This document shows, one piece after another, positions 10,091-46,101 of a stretch of 64,000 bases of DNA. Source of the DNA: Octopus bimaculoides (Eukaryota); contig NC_068994.1 in the NCBI RefSeq assembly GCF_001194135.2, forward strand, positions 4,684,280-4,748,279, read 5' to 3'. The position numbers and the translations under genes are program-made. The notes below the pieces were generated by a model. The model saw only the letters and a program-made list of their open reading frames with translations. It ran no database searches and was not told where the DNA came from. The number at the start of each line of letters is the position of its first letter. Position 1 is the stretch's first letter.

Positions 10091-12289
10091 CTTACTCCAC
10101 AATCGTCTTCAGCCACTTCTTCAATTAGTGAAGGTTGATTGTATAATTAGTAATGGGGAGTTCTTTCATTACATTTGTTTGTTTTTATGTCTGTTTTTTC
10201 CATCCTGGCATGGGCTAGATGAGTACATAATATTGAGGTATTGTTTTGCAACTGGATGCTCTTTCTGTCACTGTCATGCACACATTTTTAAGTAAGGGAT
10301 TTCTTATTTCACATATCTTTGAAAGCATGAAGCTAATGGACAGTTTGTTGATAGAAAATATAACAAGACTATCACCACATGTTGCTTGCAGTTTTTGGAG
10401 AAATATGAAAATAAACAAATATGCAGATGCACATGCATTCACACATGCGTCCCTTACTTGAACAGCACATATGGATCATGTGAGCTACCAGCAGTCGTCT
10501 CAGAACTGAGCTCTGATGGTCCACAGCAAGTTTTATGTCCTTACTGTGTTGTTGCATTTGTATTTGATGGCTCGTGAAGTTTCCTTGTGAATTTTGTGGA
10601 CCATTTTCTGTAAAAAGTTTAGCATTAATATCACTTCGCTAGAGATCAGAAATTGTATCCATTTGTCTGCATTGGAAACAATTCCTCTTGGACAAGAAGA
10701 CCCGTCTTCTACCATGCCTGCTGACCTTATCAATTCAATTCTTACTTCACTGCCTCCCATTAAACTTTGTATTCATGATGATGATCATCATCTTTTAACT
10801 TCCACTTTCCCTGCTGGCATGAGTTGGGCGGTTTCACAGGGGCTGGCCAGGCTCCTATTGTCTGTTTTAGCTTGGTTCTTATGGCCGGATGTCCTTCCCA
10901 AAGCCAATCACTTTAAAGAGAGTGCTGGGTGCACTTACGTAGCACTGGCGCAAGTGCGTTTTATATGGCACTAGCACCTCTCAGCTGGGAGAGGGGATGG
11001 GGCCATGGGCATAAAGGACATGCCAGTATGTATGGATTGGTCATAATTTTACTTAGCTTGACATGCCTTCTCAAGTACTGCAAATTGCCACAAGTCATGG
11101 TCCCTTGTCAAATTGCCATAAGTCCGGGTCCCTTGTCCCAAGTATATATATAATTAAAATTAATCAAAGGACATACTAAGTATGTCTACCTGCTAGAAAT
11201 AACAGTCAAAACTCTTATTTAAATCGCCAAAGTACACTGATAATAACTACAGAAATCAACCATCTGAATGCAATCTCCCAACGTACATTCATGGGTTGGG
11301 TGAATATATTAATGACATGGATTTTACAGCCAGATGCCCTTCTTGAGTTGAGAATTTGCTTCTCAACAGCATGATTTCATGTTCAGTCCTGCTGTGTGGA
11401 ACTTTGGGCAAGTGTCTTCTATTACAACTTTCTTATGTGGTGCCGGCACAGGTGTCTTTTACATGGCACCAGCACGGGTGGTTTTTATGCGAACACCAGC
11501 ATCCGTTTCCAATATTTTTTGAAAGGGCATCTGGTCGTAGAAAATCTGTCTCAGTAAACTCCATCCGACCCATGCAGTCATGGAAAGAGGGTTACTAAAA
11601 TAATAATTGATATGTATATAAGCAAGCATATGTGTGTGTGTACAATTATACTTTTATACAACAATCTGTATTTGAGATTTGCTCTAGCCTTCTTCTTCTG
11701 TCCTGGTTTAATTTTCTTCCTCTTTCTTGCTTACTTGCAGATGGCAACAGCGTGATGTCCAACTCGGCGGGAGATATGAAAGACCAAAGAAAGCCGTGAT
11801 GCATGGCTGATCATTCGGGCGAACAACTAATATGGTGGCTATTCAATGTTGTCTGTGTATTAACACAGAGGGGATGGGGAGCCAGGCGTGCCCTCTGGTG
11901 ATCACATCCTTCTAGTCCCTTACTGGTTCATGATGACACCTTGGCTTGCGGGGTAAAGTCTTTCTGGCCACAACGCAACACTTCAGTTGCGCCCAAGTTT
12001 TATTTATGTCCCAACAGCAATAGTAGCAACACAAAATAATACAAAAATAACAGTTACAACAACAACAACAATAATAATTGAATAATAATAACAATAATAA
12101 TTATGATGCCAGTGGTTATTCTCCTATTTTCTTACTACCTCTTTGTTTAGGTAACGAGCTAATGAACTTGATATTGCGGTATTAGATATTAGCATGCTTA
12201 ATTGTGAGAAGTGGCTCCTTTTAATTAACAAATAAATTGCTCTATCGTGCTGACATCATCAATATCAGCTGTATTATAGCTATACATAC

Positions 12290-14817: not shown

Positions 14818-16170
14818 ATGTGTTCTAATTCAGCTGTACAATACCCTCCCATTACAAACCATGTGAACTACCACGCCTGCAGTTTAGCATACTCTCAGGT
14901 CGGCATCACTCCCTCCTACCTCAGTTATAAGCAGAGGTATATCGAAAAGAAACCCTATAAATGCAATATCTGCCGTAAGCGGTTTGCATTGAGAGCCTAC
15001 CTGAAAAAGCATGAAATGGCTCCTGAGGCCGGCAAACATTTCACATGTATGTTTTGCGGCAAAGCTTTCCCGGAGCGTGACAAACTGCGTAATCATGAAC
15101 GTACTCACACCGGTGAGAGACCCTTCCCTTGTGAGCTTTGCGATATGGCTTTTGCTCAGAAAGACAAGTTGAAGATCCATCAACTGACTCACACCGGCAG
15201 TAAACCCTTTCAGTGTACCATATGCCACAAAGCCTTCTCTAGAAACGATAAACTTAAAATACACACCCGTTCTCACACAGGAGAGCGGCCTTTTGAATGC
15301 TTAATTTGTCGTCGCGCGTTCTCTCGCAACGACAAGTTAAAGCTGCATCAGCGGTCGCACACGGGTGAAAAACCATTTGAGTGCCCTGTTTGTCAACGGT
15401 GTTTTTCACGCAATGACAAGCTGAAAATCCATGAGAGATCACATACAGGTGAGAAACCGTTTAGCTGTGGGATTTGTCAGAAAGCTTTCTCTCGTAAGGA
15501 CAAGATGAAAATTCATGAATTCACACACAGTGGGGAAAAGCCATTTAGTTGTTCGCTTTGCTCAAAGTCCTTCTCTCGCAAGGACAAACTAAAATTGCAC
15601 GAGTTTACGCATTCAGGACAGAAGCCTTACAGTTGCGAAATATGCCGCCGTGCATTCTCTCGCAACGACAAGCTGAAGTTGCACCAGCGCACACACATAG
15701 CCAGTGCCATGGGTACAGAGGAGAACAAGATGAACAAATGCGACAAAGATTGCACCATGGCTGCTGCTACTGCACCACCGCCACCGCAACGATGTAACAC
15801 TGATAAACACAGCCAGTGTCACGCAGGGAACCATGCTGTCACCACACTGGTTGCATCTGCACCAACTTCGGTGCAGTCTTCGTCTATGATACCAACACCA
15901 GCTGCATGTTCACACCAAAGAATGCCCTCTCACTTGCCACATCTGCCACAGTTACCACCACTCACCCTCAATTCTCCTCCCATGGCTACGGCCTGCTCTC
16001 ACCAGATGTCGGCTTTGAACAACTTCAACTGGAAGAGGAATGTTCCCCCCATGACGTCTACATGGACTACAAACTGGGGTAACACCCTCAGCGTGCCGTC
16101 CTACAGCATCGGACAGAGGAAGTGTGAGAACCAAGAAGCAGTACACAGCATTCAAACCTTAATGCACTAA
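14818..16170 (+). CDS. C2H2 zinc-finger protein ZNF-A (450 aa; 9 fingers, finger 1 lacks the second His; His/Pro/Ser-rich C-terminus)
   Basis: Uninterrupted ORF with tandem C-x2-C-x3-F-x5-L-x2-H-x3-H units and TGE(K/R)P linkers. ATG directly follows a pyrimidine tract + AG (14816-17). AATAAA at 16397-16402. Confidence 0.92.
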   Translation: MCSNSAVQYPPITNHVNYHACSLAYSQVGITPSYLSYKQRYIEKKPYKCNICRKRFALRAYLKKHEMAPEAGKHFTCMFCGKAFPERDKLRNHERTHTGERPFPCELCDMAFAQKDKLKIHQLTHTGSKPFQCTICHKAFSRNDKLKIHTRSHTGERPFECLICRRAFSRNDKLKLHQRSHTGEKPFECPVCQRCFSRNDKLKIHERSHTGEKPFSCGICQKAFSRKDKMKIHEFTHSGEKPFSCSLCSKSFSRKDKLKLHEFTHSGQKPYSCEICRRAFSRNDKLKLHQRTHIASAMGTEENKMNKCDKDCTMAAATAPPPPQRCNTDKHSQCHAGNHAVTTLVASAPTSVQSSSMIPTPAACSHQRMPSHLPHLPQLPPLTLNSPPMATACSHQMSALNNFNWKRNVPPMTSTWTTNWGNTLSVPSYSIGQRKCENQEAVHSIQTLMH

Positions 16171-23124: not shown

Positions 23125-23820
23125 TTAGGTGTTCCTTGTATGCACACGTTGGTGTTTTTTTAAATCACTACTTTGAGAATATTGTGCAGGACACAATTCA
23201 CATTTGAAAGGTTTTTCACTGCTATGGCTCATTCGATGTCGCTTCAAGAGACTGTATGTAGAGAAAGCAGCCGGACAAACTTCACACTGGAACGGTTTCT
23301 CACCTGTGTGTGTCCGGTGGTGCTGCTTCAGTGAAGAATTCCTAGAGAAAGCAGCTGAACAATAATCGCATTTATAGGGTTTCTCACCGGTGTGGATCAT
23401 GCGATGTTTCTTGAGGTCACAGTTTTGAGTGAACGCTGCTGAACAAAGGTCACACTTGAACGGCTTCAAGCCTGTGTGATTCATGTGGTGACGTTTGAGT
23501 AAACTACGCGTCGAGAATGCAGAGGGGCACTCTTCGCATTTGAATGGTTTCTGCCCTGTATGAGTGAGGCCGTGTTGTTTGAGAGAACTGTTGCGTGAAA
23601 ACGCTGCCCCACACGTGTAGCAGGTGAATGGTTTCTCCCCTGTATGAATCATGTTGTGTTTCTTTAGATCACTGCTCTGTAAGAACGCAGCAGAGCATAC
23701 ATTGCACTGGTATGGTCGCTGACCCTCGTGGATCAACTTGTGCCGTCTTAAGAGACTCAACGTTGATAACGAAGAACCACATATCTGACAGTGACACATC
23801 TTGACCAATACATCAGCCAT
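23125..23820 (-). CDS. C2H2 zinc-finger protein ZNF-B (231 aa; 8 fingers, almost no non-finger sequence)
   Basis: Intact ORF with 8 tandem fingers and TGEKP-type linkers. An in-frame TGA at 23836-38 closes the frame upstream, so an extra coding exon would need a nearby acceptor. Candidate AATAAA (minus strand) at 22677-82. Confidence 0.9.
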   Translation of the reverse strand: MADVLVKMCHCQICGSSLSTLSLLRRHKLIHEGQRPYQCNVCSAAFLQSSDLKKHNMIHTGEKPFTCYTCGAAFSRNSSLKQHGLTHTGQKPFKCEECPSAFSTRSLLKRHHMNHTGLKPFKCDLCSAAFTQNCDLKKHRMIHTGEKPYKCDYCSAAFSRNSSLKQHHRTHTGEKPFQCEVCPAAFSTYSLLKRHRMSHSSEKPFKCELCPAQYSQSSDLKKHQRVHTRNT

Positions 23821-24224: not shown

Positions 24225-24930
24225 TGAGGTTGACTTTGCTTTTCATCATTTTAGGAGGTCGATAAATTTAATGGCAGTCAAGCACTGGGATCAATGAAAT
24301 CCAGTGGCCACCCCCACTTAAGATTTCAGGCTTTGTGCCTATTGTAGAAAGCGACAGAGACGTTAGCTCCCCAGGCAAAATGCTTAGTGGCATTTTTTCC
24401 GTCTTAACATTCTGAGTTCAAATTCTGTTGAGGTCAACTGTGCCTTTTGGAGTTTATAAAATAAGTACCAGCTGAACATTGGGGTTGATATAATCAGCTT
24501 ATCTCCTCTCCACAAACTGCCAGCTTTGTGTCAAAATTTAAAATCATTATTATTGTTGTTGTTATTGTTAAGGTGGTGAGCTGGCAGAATCGTTAGCATG
24601 CTGGACAAAATGCTTTGTGGTATCTCACCTGTCGCTCCGTTCTGAGTTTAAAATCTGCCAAGGTCGACTTTGCCTTTCATCCTTTCAAGGTCAATAAATT
24701 AAGTACCAGTTGCATACTAGGGTCGATTTAATCAACTGGCCCCCTCCCCTAAAGTTTCAGGCCTTGTGCGTATAGTAGAAAGGATTATTGTTGTTAGCTA
24801 GAAGAATTATTAACATGCTGGACAAAATGTTTAGTGGCAGTTTGTCCAGCTGTATGTTCTGAGTTCAAATTCCACCGAGGTCAACTTATCCTTTCAGGGT
24901 TGATAAAATAAGTACCAGTGGAGCAAGGGG
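24225..24930 (+). repeat. Stack of 4 co-oriented SINE-A copies in the putative ZNF-B intron
   Basis: The core motif recurs at about 24230, 24430, 24660 and 24875. The best-preserved copy is 24569-24785. Confidence 0.75.
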
Positions 24931-37183: not shown

Positions 37184-37225
<42 letters not shown>

Positions 37226-37491
37226 TAATAACAACAATAACAAGAACAATTTGTGTGGTACAAAGTAATATGGAAGAGGTAGGGGATGGGGAGGTATGGG
37301 ATGGGGGAGGTGGTGGATAGGAGGGAAGAGGAAGGTGTATAGTTAGCTGACTTGAACCCAGAGGAACAAAAGGCAAAGTCGACCCCAACAACATTTGAAC
37401 CTGGAAGTGGTGATCACCAGACTAGGCACTTCCTCTCAGTGTCTTTCTTTCCCCAAGTGCCAACTCCACTAAGTTTCTTACATGATGATGG

Positions 37492-37534
<43 letters not shown>

Positions 37535-38593
37535 AATAATAATGATTTCAAGTCTTGGCACAAAGCCAGAATGATAATAATGAGAGTAACAACAACAATT
37601 AATAATATTCATACAGATGACGATGATAATAAAAAAAAGTTTTTTTAAGTCAGGCACAAAGCCCTTATGAAAGGCAAATAGTGTTAAGTGTCTTGTTTAA
37701 GGACACAGTAAAACATCTACAGCAGAAAGAGTTGAAAATTCAACAGAGAGGATGGTGGAAAATGATAATAATAATAATAATGGTTTCAAATTTTGCCATA
37801 AGGGCAGCAATTTTGGGGAAGGGGGATAGTTGACCTCAGTACTTAACTGGTACTTAATTTATCAACCCCTGAAAGGATCAAAGGTAAAGTCAACCTCGGC
37901 GGAATTTGAACTCAGGACGTAGGGGCAGACAAAATACTGCTAAGCATTTTGTCTAGTGTGCTAACGAGTCTATCAGCTTGCCACCTAATAATAATAATAA
38001 TGATAATAGTAATAATAATAATAATAATAATAGTAATGGTTTCAGATTTTGACAGGAAATTTTTAGCAGGGGTCGTTACTCAATTCCACCAACGCCAGGC
38101 CAGGGCTAAAGAATGACAGGCAAAGTTGACTTAAGTGCCATTTGAACTCAGAATGTTAAGATCAAAACTGCCGCTAAGCATCTTGTCTGACGTTCTACCG
38201 ATTCTGCTGGCTCACTTCGGCAGAAGGGCCAGTATTTTAGGGAGAGGGGTTTAGTTGGTTACAGCAACCCCAGTGTTCAGCTGGTACTTTATTTTAGCGA
38301 CCGCGAAGGGATGAAAGACAAAGTTGACCTCGGCAGGATTTGAGCTCAGCACAAAAAGTGTGGAGAAATGCTACTAAGCATTTTCTCTGAAATGAGAAAG
38401 ATTTTGCCAGCTTTCCACCTTAATAATAATAATAATAATAATAATAACAACAACAATCAGTAACTTAGACTCAAGGCCACATGATTCTAGGGGTGGATTG
38501 CAGTTGATGACTAAATATTTCAATGACATGCTATAAGAACGAAAGGCAAAGTCAAACCCTGTTGAATTTTAACTCAGTTCTGTAAAGAAATGA

Positions 38594-43506: not shown

Positions 43507-43538
<32 letters not shown>

Positions 43539-43683
43539 CATTATTACTATCATTACAACTACTAATATTAACAGTTTGTGCTGCTGCTGCTGCTGTTGTT
43601 GTTGTTGTTATTTTCATATCTATGAATGTTCCAAATATTATTGGTTGTTTGATTGGTTAGGTTGTTTTTAATTTTTAAAATTT

Positions 43684-46101
43684 TTATTTGTCATTGCCGT
43701 AGTGGTCGGAGTTACTCTTAGAAGGTGCGTGAATGCCTTGGATGTTGTTCCAAGAAGTTTGTTTACCTTGCTTGACCCCACAGGAATAGCTCGAAGGAAC
43801 GCTAGGCCAGCTGGAACCAAGCAAAGGAGGCATGGGGTACCCTCTAGACCACAGATAGTTGCTCTCCCAACTCTGTGGCATTTCGTGCAGATATGCTGGG
43901 GTGGATGTATGAGAAACTGGGATTGAAGGAGTCTGTAACTGGGTGGATTGCACATGAGGATCTCGGTGATGTGCTAATGACATGGGCCCGGGGTGGGGTG
44001 AACCACCCTGATTGACTTTCATGCTGTTTTTATGTGAAGACGATGAGATTGGTGGTGATGAAGAATTTGGTATGTGCTGATGATGTTTGTTGCTATGTGT
44101 TTCTGGGCTGTATGTATTAAATGGGGAAGAGCTTTTGTTCTGCGGATGTGTGGAGTGAGTAGGCGTGCTGTTCCCACTCAACATCGAAGGGGGCGGTTGA
44201 GGGAGGGGAGGCTCGCAGCCGGGTCGAGGCCGTTTGTGAGTGGCAATATGAGATTCACTCTCACATGTGCTGAATGCAGACGGAGGCTTTTCTTGGGTGT
44301 GGTTCGAGGACTGATGACTCATTCGGCTTCCACTGTTCAACAAAGATGAAGAAGAGTTTGGAGATGACAGCGAATGCATTTGCGATGCCTGTGGTTGTGG
44401 ATTCTTCGTGAAGAGTTCACAACCTGTACGTGTGCGCCTATGATTGTTTAAGTTTGCCTTTTGCGAGAAAGATTTCCCACAACTTTCACACTTAAATGGC
44501 TTCTCTCCAGTATGAGTACGAAGATGAGTTTTCAAGTTACCAGCCTGCGAGAATACCTTAGGACAAAGGTCACAACAATATGGTTTCTCTCCAGCATGGG
44601 TGCGAAGGTGAAGCTTCAAATTACCTCTCTGGCTAAAAGCTTTGTCACACAGGTTACATTTAAATGGTTTTTCGCCTGTGTGCGTTCTCATGTGATTTTT
44701 CAAATTTATTTGAAGAGTAAATTCTTTGGGACAATAATCACATTTATACAGCTCCCCGGTGTGTATACGTTCATGGATTTTGAGGAAAAACTGGTTACAA
44801 AATGGTTTCTTGCAGAACTGACAATAGTAGAGCTCTCCTGTGTGGAGTCTTTTGTGGTCGTTTAAATTAATCTTCTGGGAAAAGGCTTTCCCACAGACAT
44901 CACAGGCAAATGGTTTCTCACCTGTATGAGTTCTGAGATGGAGTTTTAAGTTACCTCTTTGGCTGAAAGCTTTTGAACAAACATGGCACTGAAATGGTCG
45001 GTCACCAGTGTGTGTTCTTTCATGATTTTTAAGATTGATTTTCTGCGAAAATGTTTTGCTACAATATTCACATTTAAACACTTCACCAGTGTGTGTACGC
45101 TCATGGATCTTCAAAAAAAACTGGTTACAAAATGATTTCTTGCAGTAGCTACAATAAAATAACTCTCCAGTGTGTATACGCTTATGATCATTCAAGTTGA
45201 TCTTTTGAGAAAATGCTTTTCCACATATGTCACATGCGAATGGCTTCTCTCCTGTATGGGTTCTCAAATGAAGTTTTAAGTTACCTCTCTGACTAAATGC
45301 TTTATTACAGACATTACATTGGAATGGTTTCTCTCCTGTGTGTGTTCTTAAGTGATTTTTCAAATTTATCTGTAAAGTGAAAGATTTTGTACAGAACGTG
45401 CATTTATACAACTCCCCTGTATGTGTACGTTCGTGTATTTTTAGAAAAAACTGGTTACAAAATGGTTTCTTGCAGAACTGACAATAGTAGAGCTCTCCTG
45501 TGTGAAGTCTTTTGTGGTCGTTTAAATTAATCTTCTGGGAAAAGGCTTTCCCACAGACATCACAGGCAAATGGTTTTTCCCCAGTGTGCGTTCTAAGGTG
45601 AAGCTTCAAATTACCACGCTGACTAAAAGATTTATTACAAACTGTACACTGGAATGGCTTCTCTCCAGTGTGAGTTCGCAGATGATTTTTAAGGTTGATT
45701 TTCTGTGTGAAGGCTTTTCCACAGTAACTGCACTCAAAAGGTTTCAGTCCTGTGTGAGTGAGTTCATGGTTCTTTAGAAAAAACTGATTTGAGAATCCTT
45801 TTTTACAGAAACTACACTGGAAATCTTTTTCCAATGGCTGATGTTGCGGTAGCTTGTTGTCATACATATGCGAGGGAGAGTGATGGGGTGGAAGCGACTC
45901 TCTGCCAGCCTCGTCCATTGCTGAAGGTGATCCTAGAGTGGTAGGAACATCTTTCCTGCCCATCTCACCTGAACTGTAAGTCTTTTCAGCAAGTGGCATT
46001 GTCTTTTCTGGACACTTTGGATAACTGCTTGGATAAACCGGCTGCCCACTATACAGCGGTGGTTGGTTGGTCATTGGAAACATCGGTTGAAAAGGATACA
46101 T
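43684..46101 (-). CDS. C2H2 zinc-finger protein ZNF-C (805 aa; 17 fingers, last one ends H-x3-R; Pro/Ser/His-rich N- and C-termini)
   Basis: 2.4 kb intact ORF with a finger array at about 44416-45822. AATAAA overlaps the stop codon (43683-88, minus strand). Confidence 0.93.

Follow-up and report, generated by a model that had tools for sequence, protein, structure and literature searches.

The stretch of DNA analysed here (the window) comprises 64,000 nucleotides of the Octopus bimaculoides genome and contains three zinc finger genes, of which the longest array belongs to ZNF-C, a gene transcribed from the minus strand at 43684..46101. The gene is real: its open reading frame (ORF) of 805 codons is uninterrupted, an exact protein look-up matches it as one continuous range in O. 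bimaculoides GCA_001194135.2 (CM046614.1, ~4.73 Mb), its termini are colinear with those of its relatives, and the only Pfam families above cutoffs are of the C2H2 type (PF00096, E = 4.7e-95; PF13465, E = 1.1e-122). The window as a whole is draft DNA (38% G+C, 1639 N); ZNF-C itself has no N. Pfam detects neither KRAB nor any other known effector domain in the protein, and without an N-terminal effector domain it falls outside the KRAB, SCAN, BTB and ZAD subfamilies. Likewise no KRAB (PF01352) is recorded for the closest relative, P0001 (see below), and the name 'KRAB' that some Sepia relatives bear was assigned by the depositor. The gene is intact, has a single exon and encodes a presumably nuclear poly-zinc-finger protein of the C2H2 type, and in these searches its family is small and confined to coleoid cephalopods.

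Parsing with a regular expression resolves 17 units of the classical form C-x2-C-x12-H-x3-H with the conserved Phe and Leu of the core, the last of which (F17) is without the final His, in the order (A-B-C-D)x4 plus one finger. With helices given as positions -1 to +6, the A helix is NQFFLKN in F1 and NQFFLKI in F5, F9 and F13; the B helix is QKINLKN in F2 and F10 and LQINLKN in F6 and F14; the C helix is QRGNLKL in F3, F7, F11 and F15; and the D helix is QKINLND in F4, F8 and F12. F16 has a diverged D helix (QAGNLKT), and that of F17 is QKANLNN. Gln at -1 is combined with Asn at +3 in 11/17 fingers, and in F6 and F14 the Asn at +3 is paired with Leu at -1. Linkers of four residues follow F4, F5, F8, F12 and F13 (TGEL) and F9 (TGEV), and the remaining linkers have five. 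The features of the gene, all on the minus strand, are as follows (AF2 is an AlphaFold2 model; aa, amino acids).

43684..46101, minus: complete single-exon coding sequence of ZNF-C, 805 aa plus stop (ORF; exact genomic match; termini colinear with relatives)
46063-46101, minus: N-terminal motif MYP.QP, common to three paralog groups
45823..46101, minus: N-terminal region, aa 1-93, with the motif MYP.QP...Q..Y....K; the rest is fast-evolving
44428..45822, minus: array of 17 C2H2 fingers, aa 94-558 (regular-expression parse; Pfam; AF2)
45490..45822, minus: module 1, F1-F4 (A-B-C-D); the F1 linker is normal, TGLKP
45160..45489, minus: module 2, F5-F8 (parse; module comparison)
44830..45159, minus: module 3, F9-F12, within a stretch lacking a one-to-one counterpart in 13-finger relatives
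44497..44829, minus: module 4, F13-F16, with D diverged to QAGNLKT; the same finger is found in O. vulgaris and Sepia
44428..44496, minus: terminal finger F17, QKANLNN, aa 536-558, with Arg replacing the last zinc-binding His
45754-45822, 45421..45489, 45091-45159 and 44761-44829, minus: the A fingers F1, F5, F9 and F13 (parse)
45490..45501 (TGEL after F4), 45409-45420, 45160-45171, 45079-45090, 44830-44841 and 44749-44760, minus: short linkers
44786..44916, minus: recent gene-conversion tract of 131 bp, with one mismatch to 45446-45576 (F12-F13 versus F4-F5)
43684..44427, minus: C-terminal tail, aa 559-805 (family alignment; modelled as disordered)
43684-43899, minus: C-terminal motif, final ~70 aa, YL..M.QSWE.NY.W.R...PP..S.WP...KQ...W...H (family alignment)

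The order of the fingers, the helices and the short TGEL/TGEV linkers had all been described in an earlier sequence-only reading of this DNA, and the parse reproduces that description exactly. The 330-bp period given there is also recovered by Tandem Repeats Finder (period 330, 3.4 copies, 73% matches, at 44580-45705), and the 14-mer anchor CTGGTTACAAAATG that it listed at 44791, 45121 and 45451 matches exactly at those three places and nowhere else in the window.

The short linkers are periodic and flank the A fingers F5, F9 and F13 on both sides. Ten of the 16 His-to-Cys links have the canonical TGEKP-type length of seven residues and the other six lack one residue; in an alignment of the D-A-B stretch with the solved PRDM9 and ZFP568 arrays, HMMER places a one-residue gap at both short linkers. 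Among 240 unrelated poly-zinc-finger proteins used as background (3090 fingers, 2528 links), 94% of links have seven residues and 3% have six. Aromatic residues at both +2 and +3 occur in 0.36% of the background fingers, compared with 4/17 fingers (all Phe-Phe) in ZNF-C. The A fingers also have the lowest PF00096 scores, at 21.7-24.2 bits (cutoff 25.2), with B, C and D fingers at 29.7-35.7. The A finger thus has the sequence features of a spacer-type finger, with both linkers short and Phe at +2/+3 (-5/-4 in the numbering of the review PMC12264921). The zinc ligands are intact in F1-F16, and the His-to-Arg substitution in F17 is shared with the orthologs. We note that this Arg, which the sequence-only reading does not mention, is kept in O. 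vulgaris and Sepia within H.RTRTGCEL (three species), where a Cys lies seven residues past the third ligand, and that AF2 runs the helix straight through the substituted end.

The modules have diverged extensively in DNA but little in the helices. Same-type fingers in different modules share 63-79% DNA identity (excluding the converted F4/F12 and F5/F13 pairs), and C and D fingers (F16 aside) share 78-100% protein identity. Nucleotide divergence between modules is 20-28%, and synonymous divergence (pS, by Nei-Gojobori counting) is 0.7-1.0, which is saturated; among pairs of modules 1-3, nonsynonymous divergence (pN) is 0.03-0.08 for helix codons, versus 0.14-0.15 for the rest of the module. 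When the array is compared with itself at a 660-bp shift, mismatches between copies fall at every third base. The saturated synonymous sites, near-invariant helices and third-base mismatches together show that the modules are old tandem duplicates of a 330-bp four-finger unit kept by purifying selection on the protein. At the DNA level, the A and B fingers group in one repeat family with 81-bp spacing. A departure from this pattern is the 131-bp tract at 44786..44916, which differs at one position from its counterpart and is flanked on either side by DNA with mismatches at every third base; it arose by recent conversion within the gene, with F4-F5 as donor and F12-F13 as recipient. This tract also accounts for the identical context of two of the three anchors.

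In a search of 5.8 billion proteins the closest to ZNF-C is P0001 (annotated as 'zinc finger protein 2 homolog'), which has 687 aa, is 72% identical to ZNF-C and has the same sequence in O. vulgaris and O. sinensis. It contains 13 fingers in an (ABCD)x3+1 array with the ZNF-C helices and short linkers. A full-length ortholog in the cuttlefish Sepia (Acanthosepion) pharaonis, found via the contig of a fragment (ORF L008:4615-6759, 714 aa), also has 13 fingers, with the same helices, TGEL linkers, LQINLKN at F6 and a degenerate last finger; LQINLKN at F6 is common to all three orthologs (O. bimaculoides, P0001 and Sepia). Between octopus and Sepia, pS is 0.77-1.06 (saturated) and pN in the fingers is 0.015-0.07. 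Among the 37 A-D fingers of the three species, positions +2, +3 and +4 are invariant within each finger type, and variation is found mostly in the beta-hairpin and to some extent between the two His that bind zinc. By the sequence-only reading, its interpretation would fall if orthologs had lost the module and short linkers; no such erosion is seen, and O. vulgaris/O. sinensis and Sepia pharaonis keep the helices, the order and the TGEL/TGDL linkers.

Because the same helices and short linkers occur in a 13-finger (ABCD)x3+1 array in both lineages, the module architecture is older than the octopus-cuttlefish split and the 13-finger form is ancestral. That split dates back some 250-300 million years. 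MAFFT places the extra O. bimaculoides stretch as an insertion from mid-F7 to mid-F11, and O. bimaculoides gained one module in register, most simply by unequal crossing-over. ZNF-C fits the old 'coleoid' tier and not a young octopus-specific C2H2 expansion: a member of the latter would be a recent duplicate with many close paralogs, and ZNF-C has a Sepia ortholog, its nearest other relative is 72% identical, and its family is small.

We define the family here by its N-terminal MYP.QP and C-terminal YL..M.QSWE.NY.W.R...PP..S.WP motifs, both of which are present in ZNF-C and form invariant columns in an alignment across three paralog groups. The invariant N-terminal columns are M1, Y2, Q13, Q20, Y23, K29 and K40. 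Neither terminal motif matches a Pfam family; both are conserved and predicted to be disordered, and they are candidates for partner-binding linear motifs. A HMMER search with the last 94 residues against 1.84 billion representative proteins returned only eight, and four of the six examined carry the motif, all of them cephalopod; the remaining two are either unnamed or unrelated. A word-indexed homolog search with the C-terminal tail alone gave no match, despite the 86%-identical tail of P0001, and the hits of a homolog search with the D-A-B-C-D-A-B stretch were all short, generic zinc-finger proteins from outside the family. Our literature searches found no description of the family or of its array grammar.

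The three paralog groups are on one chromosome, at 75.65, 75.76 and 78.55 Mb in O. vulgaris, and in O. bimaculoides at 3.39 and 4.73 Mb. In O. vulgaris, ~105 kb separates P0001 from paralog 2 (L007 / L009); for paralog 3 (L004 / L005) the distance is 1.3-2.8 Mb. B-C-D triads make up paralog 3 (P0032 and relatives), which has no A finger, and paralog 2 (P0127, also in Argonauta) consists mainly of A-C-D triads, the exceptions being a B-like finger in its first module and a second A-type finger (NEFFLRN) in its middle module; the paralog fingers are likewise rich in Gln and Asn. In the repeating modules of ZNF-C and its orthologs, and in those of paralog groups 2 and 3, the D-type fingers (..LNDH or ..LDNH) are followed by a four-residue linker TG[DEN][LMV], which takes the form TG[DEN][LM] in the two paralog groups; it is found in Octopus, Argonauta and a paralog-3 cluster, and is kept in the Sepia paralog-3 copy P0122. 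As the paralog groups have triads and not a four-finger period, the short linker after D is a conserved family trait and the four-finger period is a feature of the subfamily. In the MAFFT alignment one half of the single paralog finger pairs with A and the other half with B, and in the ZNF-C period A and B together fill the place of one finger. Duplication of a 'short linker plus finger' unit would explain the two short linkers around A.

Comparison of 43684-46101 with the P0001 locus (L003:10001-12064) shows that divergence between O. bimaculoides and O. vulgaris is a mosaic along the gene.

N-terminus: 44% aa identity
F1-F4: pS 0.09, no amino-acid change, 98-99% nucleotide identity
F5-F6: pS 0.33
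F7-F11: no clear one-to-one partner, 74-79% nucleotide identity
Last three fingers: pS 0.74, saturated as between octopus and Sepia
Last 110 residues: pS 0.34

Across the C-terminal tail, ZNF-C and P0001 are 86% identical, and no alignment was obtained between the flanks of the two loci. By contrast, in the paralog-3 pair both flanks align at 76-86%, and coding pS averages 0.158 (range 0.03-0.31) with pN 0.005. Abnormal silent-site conservation of F1-F4 was considered and rejected, as its pS of 0.09 is inside that paralog-3 baseline; the anomaly is the excess divergence elsewhere in ZNF-C. An origin of the diverged 3' fingers by conversion from paralog 2 or paralog 3 was also rejected, because identities to these paralogs are just 65-77%, and there is no second copy of ZNF-C in the window. 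The mosaic may reflect old co-orthologs with differential loss and partial conversion, or it may be due to recombination-driven turnover of the 3' array.

A full-length AF2 model, made from a nine-row family alignment, contains 17 beta-beta-alpha units. The predicted local distance difference test score (pLDDT) is ~70-82 over most of the array, highest around F4-F6 and 56-65 at aa 381-410. The N-terminus (1-92; pLDDT <30) and tail (558-805) are modelled as disordered, with the conserved motifs included. The best PDB matches are DNA-bound arrays (ZFP568, CTCF, PRDM9 and Aart), in which three- to four-finger stretches align with template modelling (TM) scores of 0.73-0.86; these are generic matches.

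In the published recognition code, Asn or Gln at base-contact positions specifies adenine and Asp specifies cytosine (PMC12264921), in agreement with the adenine-reading role that the sequence-only reading assigned to Gln and Asn. Under this code the B finger (Gln at -1, Asn at +3, Asn at +6) would read AAA, the C finger NAA and the D finger (Asp at +6) CAA, so that the B, C and D helices applied in turn give a predicted triad target of approximately 5'-CAA-NAA-AAA-3'. Known spacer fingers include TFIIIA ZF4 and ZF6, CTCF ZF8, Zfp568 ZF2 and HIC2 ZF2; the linkers of TFIIIA ZF6 are shortened, and an aromatic residue at +2, as in CTCF ZF8, can lift a finger off the bases (PMC12264921). Spacer fingers are not yet predictable from any feature, which a 2024 review lists as an open problem (PMC12264921).

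We propose that the B-C-D triads dock in the major groove, where each would read ~9 bp of A-rich DNA, 5'-CAA-NAA-AAA-3'. The A finger, with linkers too short for canonical continuation and Phe-Phe at contact positions, would not read bases in the usual way and would act as punctuation, as a spacer or re-phasing finger that possibly also contacts protein. The protein would then bind a site made of three or four A-rich 9-mers a fixed distance apart, or it would slide along (NAA)n-like tracts in register, while its conserved disordered termini recruit partners. We favour punctuation as the role of the A finger because it combines the short linkers and aromatic residues of known spacers and recurs periodically. 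ZNF-C is a conserved regulator that probably reads A-rich DNA, with the target as predicted here. A conserved coleoid regulator with predicted A-rich-DNA triads punctuated by the A finger is the best explanation of the data as a whole, and one that we hold tentatively, at a little under an even chance.

Several observations weigh against this interpretation. Paralog 2 has an A-type finger at the place where paralog 3 has B (X-C-D triads), and the A finger could contact DNA, for example at thymine methyl groups, and not be a pure spacer. The recognition code predicts targets only approximately, and long arrays frequently employ just some of their fingers. The inter-finger geometry of the AF2 models is unreliable (predicted TM score 0.29 at full length; pLDDT 54 for an F4-F7 fragment modelled from a three-row alignment). 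In engineered long arrays the periodic linkers have to be longer than usual and not shorter (PMC5013590). The 9-mer derived from the code, CAANAAAAA, occurs 21 times in the window versus 7.8 expected, a modest enrichment; this is uninformative, since A-rich low-complexity DNA would give similar counts anyway.

Tracts in the NAA register are strongly over-represented in the window, with 157 matches of AANAANAANAANAA versus 0.84 expected, and 42 of the tracts have five or more units. Together they cover ~970 bp (~1.6% of the window), less than (AT)n does; the statement in the sequence-only reading that such tracts dominate the window was overstated. The NAA microsatellites are common here but have no observed tie to ZNF-C. 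One example is a compound perfect microsatellite, (TAA)14(GAA)24(CAA)12, in a single register at 1074-1219, and similar mixed NAA tracts are present at 12058-12100, 24547-24569, 37184-37249 and 38421-38456. Closest to the gene, (CAA)5(CAG)5 plus (TAA)n lies on the sense strand at 43508-43612 (minus), less than 200 nt downstream of the ZNF-C stop codon. Autoregulation through this 3' (CAA)n/(TAA)n tract was rejected, as it is not conserved: the O. vulgaris locus has (TA)n there and Sepia has none. More broadly, ZNF-C could represent a natural family of repeat readers, in which adenine-reading triads, short linkers and the Phe-Phe spacer serve in-register binding of (NAA)n or periodic A-rich DNA, of which these genomes hold unusually large amounts, and have been kept since before the octopus-cuttlefish split. 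We consider this doubtful, and if true, it would make ZNF-C a natural counterpart of engineered repeat-binding arrays and provide the first sequence signature predicting spacer fingers. In sum, the anatomy given by the sequence-only reading is right, the conservation is strong, and its adenine-reading and spacer ideas have published precedent; that interpretation is partly supported, and its DNA target, along with (NAA)n or A-tract reading and a spacer role for the A finger, is a prediction from the helices and linkers.

The periodicity of the array might be only historical, with ZNF-C a conserved transcription factor that places a few fingers on a short ordinary motif and uses the others for structure, protein binding or affinity. 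Many long C2H2 proteins bind with a subset of their fingers, and the difference between 17 and 13 fingers among species implies that the protein can do without an exact register on a long fixed site; spacer and non-contact fingers have also been reviewed (PMC12264921). However, the helices are near-invariant in every module and species and not just in a subset, and position-specific variants such as LQINLKN at F6 in the three orthologs are kept as well, and we regard a purely historical periodicity as a serious possibility, if a somewhat improbable one. A different function, as a binder of RNA or single-stranded nucleic acid (e.g. poly(A) or A-rich RNA) or mainly as a protein scaffold, would have Phe-Phe stack on bases or contact protein. 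The rarity of helix-face aromatic pairs among DNA-reading fingers (0.36% of background) is consistent with this, as are the scores of the A fingers below the Pfam C2H2 cutoff, their weak matches to zf-C2H2_jaz, which binds double-stranded RNA, and the ability of classical fingers to bind RNA (PMC5100589). Yet the jaz matches are overlapped by stronger C2H2 matches, 13/17 fingers are canonical TGEKP-type units bearing Gln/Asn, and the closest solved relatives are all DNA complexes; we consider a mainly RNA-binding or scaffolding role unlikely.

The surroundings of ZNF-C, clustered with two other zinc finger genes, together with its change in finger number between species and its fast-diverging N-terminus and tail, recall a fast-evolving transposon-targeting 'arms-race' gene of an octopus-specific, KRAB-ZNF-like expansion, and octopus zinc finger proteins have been proposed to target repeats (PMC10547256; PMC12513265). 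The invariance of the contact residues from octopus to cuttlefish is the opposite of what arms-race arrays show and largely refutes this idea, and neither the lack of a KRAB or other known effector domain by Pfam nor a tail-motif family of eight representatives among 1.84 billion proteins fits it, leaving it very improbable. Equally improbable is an assembly error or a decaying duplicate as the origin of the fourth module or of the entire 17-finger form. Such an error is conceivable in a draft window with 1639 N, where the 131-bp near-identical tract could mislead an assembler, and the mosaic divergence from O. vulgaris and the failure of the flanks to align could be seen in the same light. 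The gene has no N, though, and modules that differ at 20-28% of nucleotides are not explained by collapsed or duplicated reads; nor does decay fit with 805 open codons, intact zinc ligands in F1-F16, an F17 substitution shared with orthologs and module differences that are mostly synonymous.

If the array grammar has the meaning proposed above for A-rich triads and a punctuating A finger, it offers a testable rule for spacer fingers and makes ZNF-C a candidate reader of octopus A-rich simple repeats. If binding is ordinary, ZNF-C is still a well-defined, conserved, coleoid-specific regulator with unnamed terminal motifs.

Two further zinc finger genes are in the window, and all three have homogeneous helices. 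ZNF-B (23125-23820, minus strand, 231 aa) has eight fingers, in which a three-finger module, T.SLLKR / Q..DLKK / RNSSLKQ, is repeated ~2.7 times; its copies have diverged in DNA, as Tandem Repeats Finder does not report the array. ZNF-A (14818-16170, plus strand, 450 aa) has nine fingers, most of them with nearly the same helix, R[NK]DK[LM]K[IL], and has an 84-bp tandem period at 15409-15587. Sharing of the ZNF-C tail motif by ZNF-A was rejected, as the BLASTP match (E = 0.067) is to an unrelated stretch.

ZNF-C resembles several known systems in part. As in known spacer fingers (PMC12264921), the A finger has an atypical base-contact face within a canonical array and non-standard linkers. However, known spacers occur once or twice per protein and have no common sequence signature, whereas in ZNF-C the Phe-Phe finger is repeated three or four times with a fixed period, and both of its linkers are exactly one residue short. 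Engineered repeat readers, such as poly-CAG ZF-KOX1 (PMC5013590), GGAA-repeat arrays (PMC9374162) and Aart for ANN triplets (PDB 2I13), are similar to ZNF-C in having many near-identical helices suited to a periodic sequence and periodic changes in linkers, and Aart is among the best structural and sequence matches of ZNF-C. They differ in that the engineered arrays lengthen the linker every two fingers, while ZNF-C shortens it around A and the paralogs every three fingers, and in that their targets are known and that of ZNF-C is predicted only. Natural binders of simple repeats include GAGA factor and CLAMP on (GA)n, and ZBTB48 and ZBTB10 on telomeric repeats. Zscan4 on (CA)n (PMC7083622) is a further example. 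The parallel lies in the role proposed for ZNF-C, recognition of abundant simple repeats through C2H2 fingers. These natural proteins have few fingers, no modular array, and neither sequence relation nor an accessory domain in common with ZNF-C.

The C2H2 repertoire of cephalopod genomes is very large, and its targets are not known (PMC12513265). ZNF-C shares with KRAB-ZNF genes and the octopus C2H2 expansion (PMC10547256, PMC12513265) a tandem array, clustering with other zinc finger genes and finger number changed by recombination; unlike them it lacks KRAB, its contact residues are frozen across coleoids and its family is small. Compared with the young expansions, its reading residues have been fixed since the coleoid ancestor, and its grammar consists of a triad, a short linker and an aromatic finger. 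PRDM9 arrays are also coding tandem repeats whose copy number changes by unequal exchange and which contain conversion tracts, but the PRDM9 unit is one finger (84 bp) with near-identical DNA and hypervariable contacts, whereas that of ZNF-C is four fingers (330 bp), old, 20-28% divergent in DNA and invariant in its contacts. ZNF-C is an unusual and deeply conserved variant of the C2H2 array, and not a new kind of system.

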